The notes beneath the pieces were generated by a model. That model was not told the origin of the DNA and ran no database searches. It was given only the letters and a program-made list of their open reading frames with translations. From positions 1 through 64,000 of the IMG/VR virus record IMGVR_UViG_3300046516_001816: DNA of 64,000 nucleotides; one strand, given 5' to 3'. The position numbers and the translations under genes were made by a program. The stretch's first letter is position 1. Every line of letters begins with the position of its first letter. Shown piece after piece: positions 47,066 through 49,763 of this stretch.

Positions 47066-47500
47066 TCAATCCTTGGCGGCCTTGAGTTTCAGCTTGTACT
47101 CGGGCGCATGCCCCTTGAACTCAGGGTCGATCGACTTGAGATGGATCTCGTAGCCGTTGCCGGACGTGGTGATGTTCGCACGGATGTGCTGATTGGCGAG
47201 CGACTCCAGCTTGGACTTGAGACCCCCGGCTGCGCCCTGCAACTTCTTGAGCACGGCCTGGAAGCGCTTGTCTGTGCCTTCGTCCTTCTTCGCTTCGAGG
47301 GCAATCGTTTCCATTGGTGCGTCGATCTCTTCGGTCGCGATGAACTGAGACTCTACCGGCACCTGTTCCACCAGGCGTTCACCCAGTTGCACGAAGAACT
47401 CGCGCGTTTCGTCTTCGGACAGATGGCCGATCGATTCGAGGGCGAGTTCCACCGGTGTTTTGGACTGAGGTTCTGCCCAGGTAAAGATTCCTTTCTTCAT
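47066..47500 (-). CDS. Putative head protein with A-x-E protease sites
   Basis: AAGGAG upstream; acidic N-terminal half with ALE, ATE, ALE. Confidence 0.7.
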   Translation of the reverse strand: MKKGIFTWAEPQSKTPVELALESIGHLSEDETREFFVQLGERLVEQVPVESQFIATEEIDAPMETIALEAKKDEGTDKRFQAVLKKLQGAAGGLKSKLESLANQHIRANITTSGNGYEIHLKSIDPEFKGHAPEYKLKLKAAKD

Positions 47501-47510
47501 GGACTGCTCC

Positions 47511-48170
47511 TTAACGCTGCACCAGAGTCATCTCAAGCTCCTTTCCATCTGGCAAGAAGACACTCTCGCCAAAGGTCGGGAACTTCGCGCTCTCGTGCAG
47601 TTCAAAGTTCTTCGCATCTCGTACCAAGTACGCGATCACGATCTCGTTGGTGATATGGAACATCCGCGCATGTTCGCGCGCAAAGTCCACACTCACGATG
47701 ATATCGCCAAAGTCTTCGCTGGTGCCGCGATTAAACGTGAACGACAACATGCGCTCAGGCACATACGCTGCTTTCTGACCGACGTCCACCGTAGCGAACG
47801 CGGCCTCCGGTCCTTTGTTGCTCGAAGGAAAGCCCCGGAACAACTTGCCGCGCGACTTTGGCTGCTGAATCTTCTCGAACACCTTCTTCGCTTCGCGCAG
47901 CTTAGGCAGGATCGCATAGTCGGTATGAACAATCCAGCGCTCGACCGCCGCGAGGAGCTCAGCGTGCTTGATCATCTCCCGCACCGCGTGTTCGTCGATG
48001 TCTTCCTTCTGGAAGGTGACTTGCGGGAAGTACCGCGCCCGCCCGGCCAAGAGCATCAGCAATTTGCCAAAGAAACCTTTCGACTGATATTGCTCGTCGT
48101 AGGCTTCTTCTTTCTCCAGGCTGATGCCCAGGCTCTGCCAGTCGTCTTCGGCGCGCTGCTCAGTGGCTAT
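47511..48170 (-). CDS. ORF lacking a good start; probable -1 frameshift (or indel) continuation of the upstream gene
   Basis: The frame stays open 36 codons upstream of the TTG at 48062 (IATEQRAEDDWQSLGISLEKEEAY...) back to the A9 run. Confidence 0.6.
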   Translation of the reverse strand: MATEQRAEDDWQSLGISLEKEEAYDEQYQSKGFFGKLLMLLAGRARYFPQVTFQKEDIDEHAVREMIKHAELLAAVERWIVHTDYAILPKLREAKKVFEKIQQPKSRGKLFRGFPSSNKGPEAAFATVDVGQKAAYVPERMLSFTFNRGTSEDFGDIIVSVDFAREHARMFHITNEIVIAYLVRDAKNFELHESAKFPTFGESVFLPDGKELEMTLVQR

Positions 48171-49078
48171 TTTTTTTTGCCGGCAAACTTTAGCGCGGTA
48201 GCCTTGTCGTGGGACTGGCTGAAGTACGCGGCCAGTTGCTTGGGCGTCGTGATCTTGTCGCCCGCTTCCTTCGTGATCTTCTTGCCCTTAAAGTGCAGTT
48301 CGATCTCGCCGATGAATTCCTTCATCTTCTCAGCCTTGAGCTTGGTGATCTTCTCACCGGCCGGGAAGAACTCGCTGTCCGCACCGAGGTTCACGTCGAA
48401 CTTGTCCTGCGCCATCTTGACGACGACCCCGAGCACGTCCGGATCACAGAAGTCAAGCCCTTGGCCTTCATCACCCGCGGCATGGCCTTCGGTGAGCTTG
48501 GCCTGGCCCTTACCGAACTTCAGTGCCTTGACCTTGTCCTTGACTTCCTTGCGCTTTTCGGCGAAGGCTTCGAGCGACGGGAAGATCTGCACGCCGGCGC
48601 GATCACACATTGCTTCGAGGGCTTTGGCGTACTCGTTGACCGATTCGGTCGCCGGGTCGCCATTCATCACCAGCACAAAGTCGGGGTTTTCCGGATCGAA
48701 CTCGGTGATCTCTTGCGAGACTTCCACCACGTCTTCGGGTTTCACGTCCGCTTCGTCGACACCGTACACGGTGGTAGCGCCATCCTGAACGTCTTCTTCG
48801 CCCAGGATCTGAACGTCTTCAGCCAGGTCAGCCAGGGAGAGCGCGTCATTGGCTTGCGACTCGGTCGCCACGCCTTCGACAGCGGCTTCTTCCTGTTGCT
48901 CGACCGGCTTGTTCTTGTTGTACATCTGAGCGAGCGCTTGCGAGAACTGCTCAGCGAGCGGCCCTTTCAGGACCATCAATTCTTTCTGGCCCTCTTCATG
49001 AGCTTCGGGTTGGCCACTACCAGTGTCCAGGGTACCGAGTTCACCTTCGAGCGCCATTTGCAAAAACGAAGTCATCAT
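48167..49078 (-). CDS. Acidic putative head protein with A/S-x-E sites and a C-terminal ACP-like segment
   Basis: Multiple ALE/ATE/SLE; LGADS and EIELHF...DKITTPKQLAAYF; the start is one of the ATGs at 49075-49087. Confidence 0.75.
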   Translation of the reverse strand: MMTSFLQMALEGELGTLDTGSGQPEAHEEGQKELMVLKGPLAEQFSQALAQMYNKNKPVEQQEEAAVEGVATESQANDALSLADLAEDVQILGEEDVQDGATTVYGVDEADVKPEDVVEVSQEITEFDPENPDFVLVMNGDPATESVNEYAKALEAMCDRAGVQIFPSLEAFAEKRKEVKDKVKALKFGKGQAKLTEGHAAGDEGQGLDFCDPDVLGVVVKMAQDKFDVNLGADSEFFPAGEKITKLKAEKMKEFIGEIELHFKGKKITKEAGDKITTPKQLAAYFSQSHDKATALKFAGKKK

Positions 49079-49170
49079 CATCCTCATTGGAGAGTGCAGT
49101 GCACAGAATAAGGGGTAAATCTTATTCGGCATTAGAGCGCCTGCCACGAAAAGGTAGGGTTAGGTATGTC

Positions 49171-49680
49171 CTGGCCCCCGCCGAGCCCGCCTGCGCCCGC
49201 TGCGCGCCCCCCAGCCTGGTCCTCGCCCGCCCCGCGCCCCGGCCGCCGCCCGCCGCGCCCATTACGTTCTCATTTGGAGGTTTTCTTTACCATCCGGTAG
49301 ATCTTCTACCAACATTAAACCAGTCAGTGCTTTGCCGTTGTTTGCTTCGCCGTTAAGGCTTTGCTACCTAGAGGATGGGCCATCGAGCCCATCCGTCTAT
49401 ACATCTACTTCGATTTTTCCAAAAAGAAAACACTTCATGCAAGGGGTTGGTCGTTCTCCCCTGAGCTGGTCCTGTTGGGACCAGCGATCTTTTCATAGAC
49501 ACCAATATGTCATTCTAGTATTTTCTTACTGCATACTGGACATAGTTATGCATTGAGGTACTATAGAACAATAAGAAAAACAAGAGGTACCCTCAATACT
49601 TATATATGGGAAGTTATGGTTTTGGAAGAGGGGCCCATATTCTAGTAAAAGGGGGAGACCCCCTTTTACTCATATATAAG
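49171..49680. other. Non-coding divergence region: C-rich tract followed by AT-rich nested palindromes
   Basis: 49171-49260 is almost all C/G. Palindromes at 49552-49597, 49599-49608/49671-49680 and 49644-49670. Confidence 0.7.
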
Positions 49681-49763
49681 ACTGTCTACAGTTGGGGAGA
49701 AACCTTTACAAACTAACTTCAGACATATATCACCTACCTGATCCCCAATCACGGAGGTGCGAG

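Follow-up and report, generated by a model that had tools for sequence, protein, structure and literature searches.

We analysed the junction between two genes on the minus strand of a 64,000-nucleotide stretch of virus DNA, referred to here as the window, which is the first 64 kb of IMG/VR record IMGVR_UViG_3300046516_001816. The upstream gene encodes a head-type protein of 304 amino acids and ends in a run of nine A residues (A9) directly before its stop codon; a second open reading frame (ORF), which lacks a start codon and probably encodes an ADP-ribosyltransferase (ART)-like protein, is open in the −1 reading frame onward from the end of that run. The complete record (G000; 284,983 bp, graded 100% complete, GC content 56.7%) encodes split virion RNA-polymerase beta subunits, a tail sheath, virion structural proteins, a large terminase and a 2,537-amino-acid cell-puncturing-type protein. 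The polymerase subunits, puncturing protein, sheath and terminase therefore mark it as a phiKZ-like jumbo phage, and its nearest relatives bearing names are the Ralstonia phages RP12 and RP31. The locus is part of a block of five minus-strand genes that begins at a divergent intergenic region (approximately 49150–49690) and ends convergent with the terminase gene. Feature coordinates are collected in Table 1, and L-numbers denote the loci and contigs that we compared.

On the minus strand, the junction reads ...GCC GGC AAA AAA AAA TAG CCA CTG AGC.... Reading from 48170 in the −1 frame yields IATEQRAEDDWQSLGISLEKEEAYDEQYQSKGFFGK and then enters the ORF listed from TTG 48062. An earlier note on this DNA had described such a run-on from GGC AAA AAA AAA TAG, with A9 at 48178–48170, and had the details right throughout; its assignment of A_AAA_AAA to the X_XXY_YYZ slippery pattern also stands, with the heptamer in the zero frame over codons 302–304 of the upstream gene. 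The geometry is compatible with a −1 shift or with the addition of one A. Runs of nine A or T are a classic substrate of productive transcriptional slippage, with the length documented for bacterial RNA polymerase (PMC5009743), and the run here has the length (an A/T run of about nine or longer) that such slippage needs of its template. Only two homopolymer runs of at least nine were found in the entire genome, the A9 at the junction included. Each is at the 3′ terminus of an ORF, in its coding strand, and behind each a long ORF goes on in the −1 frame. AAA accounts for 24.7% of lysine codons genome-wide and TAG for 6% of stops. Because runs of this length are so few and these codons so uncommon, the A9 run at the junction is no chance feature. 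Given three lysines, the probability of three minor AAA codons, at positions where the closest relative has GCC AAG AAG, is about 1.5%. We also considered the T9 on the plus strand as a terminator and rejected it: only a weak 5-bp stem (GCTGC-TCA-GTGGC, window 48155–48178) is present, such stems occur at chance level (4 found versus 3.1 expected) and no plus-strand gene ends there.

The sequence between the run and the first canonical start is coding. No ATG, GTG or TTG occurs in the −1 frame between the previous stop (at about 48290) and 48062, which leaves 36 extra codons with no start, as the earlier note had reported together with the ATE and SLE motifs that we find at residues 2–4 and 17–19. 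The codon score of this extension is +8.0, compared with 10.9 ± 4.5 for in-frame 36-codon windows of the genome, −24 and −19 for off-frame windows and −16 for intergenic windows (95th percentile +3.1), placing it above 95% of the intergenic windows. Codon usage is genome-typical right up to the A9 run. PHROG 29772, a family of unknown function, matches residues 15–218 of the 219-amino-acid form (E = 4e-71); this match reaches into the extension, which is therefore part of the protein family. The 36 codons are thus genuine coding sequence, and we found no other gene in the genome with a start-less extension of coding quality. A Shine–Dalgarno (SD) core (GGAG, GAGG or AGGA) precedes a start within the first 50 codons in about 73% of the genes of this genome, and none precedes ATA 48170, TTG 48062 or ATG 48056. 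With neither a start nor an SD core, translation of the extension therefore needs something besides ordinary initiation.

Could the enzyme nevertheless be made alone, with the A-run incidental or part of an unstructured A-rich leader? Initiation would have to occur at TTG 48062 or ATG 48056, giving 181–183 amino acids, or by reinitiation after the UAG at ATA 48170 or at a CTG. The absence of an SD core before every candidate sets them apart from most genes of this genome, and the canonical starts lie 105–111 nucleotides past the stop. Starting there keeps the predicted fold, which spans residues 46–219, and agrees with the gene caller, which predicted a 181-amino-acid product (P0001), but it loses the conserved N-terminal motif LGxxLEKEExYDE, including its [S/A/G]-x-E element, that is found family-wide. 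The ATA overlaps the stop in the manner of common four-nucleotide ATGA overlaps and aligns with Met1 of the homologues, which stand alone elsewhere; however, ATA initiates very poorly and accounts for only 1.6% of isoleucine codons here. Independent initiation also leaves the position of one of the two A9 runs in the genome unexplained, and we consider it unlikely.

Comparison with relatives indicates how the arrangement arose. The upstream protein has its closest relative in P0012 of L037, which is 90% identical (86% at the DNA level); P0012 ends ...HDASKAIKFKGAKK whereas the window protein ends ...HDKATALKFAGKKK, with the stop at the identical codon. The L037 gene finishes GGC GCC AAG AAG TAA, and 12 bases after its stop lies a homologue of the 144-amino-acid gene (MKKGIFTWAEP) that follows in the window, behind a GGAG-type SD. 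The two sequences remain similar as far as three bases past the stop (TAG-CCA versus TAA-CCA) and become similar again from GGAG-n6-ATG of the 144-amino-acid gene. The segment 48163–47511 is therefore an insertion that contains the start-less enzyme ORF, and between these two genomes the A-run is present only where that ORF is. That the A-run arrived with the insert was rejected, as the similarity to L037 goes on through the stop and the three bases after it. We also discarded the argument that a local burst of substitutions proves selection: the entire C-terminal tail of the upstream protein is variable, so the local changes relative to L037 are unexceptional, and 11 of 298 four-codon windows are equally divergent.

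The two ORFs did not arise by the splitting of a single older gene. In L038, L039 and L040, the upstream protein is 57–66% identical and the enzyme gene is absent, and all 17 aligned members of the upstream family end without an enzyme extension. Elsewhere the enzyme gene is a standalone one that begins with an ATG of its own, has no A-run and lies in quite different neighbourhoods. Upstream relatives without the enzyme and enzyme homologues on their own thus exclude an ancestral gene split by frameshift, as does the stop at the identical codon of the 90% relative. In L004 (upstream protein 59% identical, enzyme 75% identical), the upstream gene ends in TAA and an ATG two bases later opens a protein of 306 amino acids that joins the enzyme domain, in frame, to a paralogue of 'module X' (E = 2e-12), a helical module of the upstream protein described below. 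By these comparisons the downstream gene is mobile cargo that has landed more than once behind this head-protein gene, here without translation signals.

The position just after the upstream gene (window 47066–48166; L004 and L037–L040) is a hot spot of variable content, occupied by the enzyme gene, the 144-amino-acid gene, a 29-amino-acid hydrophobic ORF or, directly, a 408-amino-acid gene. Several of these genes have a common N-terminal peptide (MKKGIFTWAEP, MRRSLFNWALEE, MKTSFFDWANDK), which in L004 heads the fusion of the module X paralogue with the enzyme.

The second A9 run (site 2) lies outside the window, at G000 279671–279679 (L011 4672–4680). It ends a 392-amino-acid ORF just downstream of an SbcC-like gene, ...GGC GTA AAA AAA AAG AAC TGA, and thus presents the heptamer A_AAA_AAG with a nearby zero-frame stop; the −1 frame goes on for 156 codons into a paralogue of the C-terminal domain of the upstream protein. 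The run is exactly A9 in six of six independent assemblies (G000, the 323,678-bp record G001 and four Logan contigs from different samples; one of the six assemblies comes from the sample of the closest relative), always in the register xTA AAA AAA AAG followed by no or one codon and a stop, across proteins that are only 30–80% identical. The ninth A comes from GTA (5.9% of valine codons) or CTA (1.6% of leucine codons), both rare, and the codon after xTA is the minor AAA, which is more than the heptamer alone requires. Directly after the run, the −1-frame peptide RALGE(T/S)IDA(V/I)NYAGRP is conserved and a start codon is not, and stable downstream structures or hairpins were found at five of the six loci (z between −1.9 and −4.6). 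Because the rare codons, the extra AAA and the −1 peptide are kept with no conserved start, and because of the downstream structures, site 2 is well supported by comparative sequence evidence as a conserved recoding site that gene callers have split into two genes. It seems to be undescribed so far. Site 2 shows that A9 runs are assembled correctly and that phages of this clade recode with them.

G000 has in-frame A_AAA_AAR heptamers at only three loci, each no more than five codons away from a stop. Gene interiors have none, with about six expected overall. A genome-wide depletion of the heptamer was not significant (4 observed versus 6 expected, P = 0.29), and only the interior absence stands. 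The third locus, an A7 at G000 95492–95498 on the minus strand (gene 95488..95949), reads CAA AAA AAG AAG TAA, four codons before the stop; there is no ORF behind it, and its −1 frame closes after six codons.

Homopolymers of nine or ten bases are the hardest to call, and a single extra A at the junction would give exactly the fused frame. The true sequence might then be A10, a plain in-frame fusion, or a mixture of A9 and A10, that is, phase variation at the DNA level. We regard this as quite improbable. Against it stand the invariant A9 of site 2 in independent assemblies, the absence of any ORF broken at another homopolymer of at least seven in the genome, and the relatives: no aligned family member (0 of 17) has such an extension, and the TAG sits at the exact stop codon of the 90% relative, which makes the short product the conserved one and the ancestral state.

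The downstream protein is likely to be ART-like, outside the named ART families. The upstream and downstream ORFs were searched and folded separately. An AlphaFold2 model of the 219-amino-acid ORF had a predicted local distance difference test (pLDDT) score of 77, and nearly all of its top 50 VIA-align matches were ARTs (among them Tre1, Vis, ExoS/T, C3, VIP2 and iota/CDTa) at moderate Z scores of 5.1–7.2. Foldseek comparisons with ARTs gave E values of 0.003 or weaker and template modelling (TM) scores below 0.4. In an independent language-model search, viral ART families predominated: PF03496, PF26816 (Mod_ADP_RT) and PF07357, with scores of 0.89–0.91. We call the protein ART-like rather than a member of a named family because neither Pfam ART families nor PDB sequence profiles gave a significant match and because the protein has no [Q/E]-x-E ADP-ribosylating turn-turn (ARTT) motif, the residue two before Glu202 being F or Y. 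A Pfam match to YbeY fell under the cut-off and was disregarded. Arg112, Ser143 and Glu202 are invariant in an alignment of 11 sequences, and their order and spacing, rather than a residue-level superposition, suggest that they are the catalytic positions of an R-S-E triad. The family is small, with ten proteins among 5.8 billion sequences. Homologues align from residue ~14 onward, Glu19 and Glu21 are near-invariant, and the motif [S/A/G]-x-E-(K/Q/E)-E at residues 17–21 keeps its [S/A/G]-x-E in ten of ten full-length sequences; P0001, the truncated 181-amino-acid gene call of the window itself, is too short to cover residues 17–19. One homologue, RP31 ORF124 (211 amino acids, 55% identical), was found by LC-MS/MS in purified RP31 virions, with two peptides and an observed mass of 25 kDa against 24.5 kDa predicted (PMC5468394, Table S3).

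We note two further features of the enzyme homologues. One metagenomic contig (L008 305–1717) carries tandem enzyme paralogues of 245 amino acids (37% identical) and 219 amino acids (68%). Directly 5′ of the homologues RP12 ORF127 and RP31 ORF124 lies a 917-bp stretch without an annotated gene or long ORF (RP12, L001 3048–3964, record 129649–130565; RP31, L041 548–1464). A scan of the RP12 stretch against Rfam gave no match at E ≤ 0.01, and the stretch may represent either an RNA not yet described or a region that has decayed.

The integrity of this enzyme bears on whether the insert is simply dead cargo, a recent insert whose start was lost and whose expression reaches no useful level, behind an A-run that grew by drift in a lysine-rich tail. 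The insertion brought no promoter, SD or start, the tail region is variable among relatives, and the site is confined to this genome and has no stimulatory structure, all of which speak for dead cargo. Yet the 219-codon frame is intact and retains every family-invariant residue, including R112, S143 and E202, and its codon usage is typical of the genome up to the run. Three consecutive minor AAA codons are themselves improbable (~1.5%), and their coincidence with the other recoding signal of the clade is hard to credit. We therefore give this explanation little weight.

The upstream protein belongs to a family represented in 17 IMG/VR jumbo-phage contigs and 23 protein clusters. A single-sequence search for its relatives returned nothing in viral contigs, and a metagenome scan with a two-sequence alignment found no relatives. 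The N-terminal part of the family is constant (MSLLKAALEGE, LKGPL, an invariant ESQANDA, TTVYGVxAxDVKPExxVEVS and SLEAFA), whereas the C terminus varies: it holds nothing more, an unrelated module or, as here, the helical module X. The AlphaFold model was poor (pLDDT 58) and suggests 100 disordered N-terminal residues, a small core, module X at residues 211–290 and a disordered, lysine-rich tail at residues 291–304. This tail and the first 29 residues of the enzyme are both predicted to be disordered. In 17 of 17 aligned upstream sequences, [A/S]-x-E is followed by SQANDA, with E, S, Q, A, N, D and A invariant and V-A-x preceding in most. The prohead-protease logo of the giant phage SPN3US is A-x-E, with V favoured at P4 and S at P1′ (PMC10052503). 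The label 'head-type' that the earlier note gave to the two ORFs is reasonable in view of this motif match in the upstream protein and of the detection of RP31 ORF124 in virions. A search of the genome for the T4 gp21-type protease (PF03420) gave no match, and the same search gave nothing in its control genomes.

Recoding at the A9 run, transcriptional or by a ribosomal −1 shift, is in our view the best explanation of the locus, with a somewhat better than even chance of being correct. On this reading, a cargo gene whose ART-like product would travel in the virion was inserted into the 12-nucleotide spacer behind the head-protein gene, without promoter, SD or start codon, and a −1 slip on A9 at the stop would make the enzyme as a C-terminal extension of the head protein. 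The phage RNA polymerase may insert one extra A at the nine-A template, or the ribosome may shift −1 on A_AAA_AAA with a slowly decoded UAG in the A site. The rate of slippage would be such that the main product is the 304-amino-acid head protein and the minority a 523-amino-acid long form. The junction in the long form would be a flexible linker of about 45 residues formed by the two disordered segments and bearing the ATE and SLE protease-type motifs; with such a linker the enzyme domain could enter the prohead on its carrier and then be cut free by the prohead protease. In the standalone homologues, [S/A/G]-x-E closes an N-terminal peptide of 17–19 amino acids, and in the fusion the same site could release the enzyme. 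The junction and site 2 are alike in their run length of nine and in the −1 relation, and at the junction the stop directly follows the run. If the selection for nine at site 2 reflects polymerase slippage, then by analogy the junction would slip likewise without any RNA structure.

The fusion of the two ORFs by recoding, as proposed in the earlier note, thus gains from the start-less coding extension, the −1 geometry and the conserved site 2, and several observations weigh against it. The junction site is unique to this genome: the slippery site and two-frame arrangement are conserved only at site 2, in the six assemblies, and L037 has neither the A-run nor the enzyme gene. L004, the only other genome in which both genes are adjacent, has a normal TAA and then an ATG, and a search for the junction pattern allowing A7–A11 gave zero matches in the metagenome or viral contigs. 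The 90 nucleotides after A9 fold no better than shuffled sequences (z = +0.58), and upstream of the run there is no SD core or SD-like stimulator and no hairpin; the UAG in the A site may stand in for an RNA stimulator. In Escherichia coli, A_AAA_AAA is far less shift-prone than A_AAA_AAG (PMC5009743). The upstream protein is variable in general over its final 13 residues, the ART-like fold would survive initiation at ATG 48056, and the length of the A9 at the junction is taken from the assembly. The expectation that orthologues, split or fused, would share the A-run did not hold, and formally the independent ATG of the downstream orthologues speaks against the fusion for that gene; yet those orthologues occupy other contexts and keep the ATG that has been lost here.

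Extension of virion proteins by frameshifting is familiar from phage T7 gene 10A/10B and from Ig-like domains on phage structural proteins, in which decoding changes frame a few codons ahead of the stop and yields a minor, C-terminally extended virion protein with an extra module. The module here would differ from these in being an enzyme of about 200 amino acids with protease-type release sites rather than a decoration domain, and it is demonstrably a recent insertion. In Thermus thermophilus dnaX, realignment of RNA polymerase on a nine-A/T run produces mRNAs with extra A residues and two products from one gene (PMC5009743). The phage shares with it a homopolymer of exactly nine, and site 2 is apparently selected for length nine beyond what the heptamer needs. 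Unlike in Thermus, where the long product is unslipped and slippage gives the short one, slippage here would give the long product, and the candidate polymerase is a phiKZ-type phage enzyme or that of the host. The −1 frameshifting of E. coli dnaX and insertion sequence (IS) elements on A_AAA_AAG likewise uses a slippery heptamer of lysine codons. Site 2 matches that type in its exact A_AAA_AAG, nearby zero-frame stop and, mostly, downstream hairpin; the junction departs from it, with A_AAA_AAA followed by UAG and no SD-like or hairpin stimulator.

Packaging of enzymes and other proteins in phage heads offers a second comparison. T4 Alt is an ART that the head carries and delivers together with the DNA (PMC7824862), and SPN3US propeptides, short ones of 20–24 amino acids and long ones of 111–254, are cut at A-x-E (PMC10052503). 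The locus resembles T4 Alt, the capsid targeting sequence (CTS) internal proteins and the ejection proteins of SPN3US and phiKZ, from which the prohead protease cuts off N-terminal propeptides at x-E motifs, and the homologue RP31 ORF124 is a virion protein. In contrast to T4 Alt and Mod, the enzyme here has no family membership at the sequence level (no Pfam match). Our literature search found no description of targeting by a trans-frame carrier for T4 Alt, SPN3US or phiKZ-type systems.

Table 1. Features of the locus (window coordinates) and homologues of the second A9 site (coordinates of the named loci)
Feature	Position	Strand	Remarks
Upstream gene, 304 amino acids from the likely start ATG 49081	48167..49081	minus	Longest ORF reaches GTG 49147 (48167..49147)
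V-A-T-E then S, residues 71–75 of the upstream protein, then invariant QANDA	48857..48871	minus	Fits A-x-E prohead-protease motif; V at P4, S at P1′
A9 run	48170..48178	minus	AAA AAA AAA, Lys302–304 of the upstream frame; heptamer A_AAA_AAA
TAG stop of the upstream gene	48167..48169	minus	Same codon as TAA of the 90%-identical relative L037
−1-frame ORF, 219 codons plus TAA	47511..48170	minus	PHROG 29772 member; predicted ART-like fold at residues ~46–219; residues 1–29 predicted disordered
A-T-E, residues 2–4 of the −1 frame	48159..48167	minus	Protease-type motif at the junction
S-L-E, residues 17–19	48114..48122	minus	Candidate maturation cleavage site; would free the enzyme domain
36 codons without a start, A-run to first canonical start	48063..48170	minus	Coding codon usage; homologous to N termini of standalone relatives, LGxxLEKEExYDE
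First canonical in-frame starts, TTG 48062–48060 and ATG 48056–48054	48054..48062	minus	No SD at either; gene caller took ATG (181 amino acids)
Arg112 in LFRGF (family LxRGF)	47835..47837	minus	Invariant; candidate R of R-S-E triad
Ser143 in SFTF (family SF[S/T])	47742..47744	minus	Invariant; candidate S of triad
Glu202 in GESVFLPDG	47565..47567	minus	Invariant; candidate catalytic E
Segment absent from L037	47511..48163	minus	Between TAG-CCA and the GGAG SD of the 144-amino-acid gene; only the start-less enzyme ORF inside
Next gene, 144 amino acids (MKKGIFTWAEP...)	47066..47500	minus	Own GGAG SD and ATG; A-x-E motifs present
Site-2 homologue, L029	1510–1502	minus	A9
Site-2 homologue, L042	1586–1594		A9
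Site-2 homologue, L043	415–423		A9
Site-2 homologue, L044	2393–2401		A9
Site-2 homologue, L045	2471–2479		A9

Two observations concern these phages more generally. A G+C-rich terminator hairpin followed directly by (T)TTATGCCG recurs at several loci: G000 at approximately 95,440–95,480 (minus strand), L030, L031 and L032 after site-2 homologues, L001 3880–3925 and L010 at approximately 1150–1200. In RP12 and L010, TATTTTATAGC comes after (T)TTATGCCG, about 35 nucleotides 5′ of an ATG. The unit looks like a combined terminator and promoter of these phages, and its TATG presumably recalls phiKZ late promoters. Assemblies of Caballeronia arationis and Paraburkholderia adhaesiva hold members of the upstream family (P0028 and P0033), and two related IMG/VR records (G001 and G005) carry the label 'provirus'. 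These assemblies and labels hint at Burkholderiaceae hosts; alternatively, jumbo-phage contigs may have been binned with bacterial genomes.

Both slippery A-runs and the extension of virion proteins by frameshifting are already established; an enzyme cargo on a head-protein carrier, with a relative in the earlier state, is new. Two results keep their value however the junction itself turns out: the conserved A9/A_AAA_AAG site 2 in this clade, and the description of PHROG 29772, a family of unknown function that is virion-associated in RP31, as probably ART-like. A broader reading is possible but doubtful, in which A9 runs serve this clade of phiKZ-like phages as a general means of recoding, with the phage's own RNA polymerase as their reader, and start-less cargo captured behind head-protein genes is loaded into the capsid as trans-frame fusions and released by the protease. 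If true, this would be a plug-in system that arms the virion with ejected enzymes, and the locus would be a recently born example of it, since the 90% relative has AAG AAG TAA and no cargo. If the junction is indeed recoded, it would represent a recoding site at birth, at which a start-less enzyme came to lie behind a structural gene and adjacent lysine codons were turned into A9, while a close relative keeps the 'before' state. Giant phages could then equip the virion with a new enzyme for ejection and would need to evolve no further targeting signal for it.

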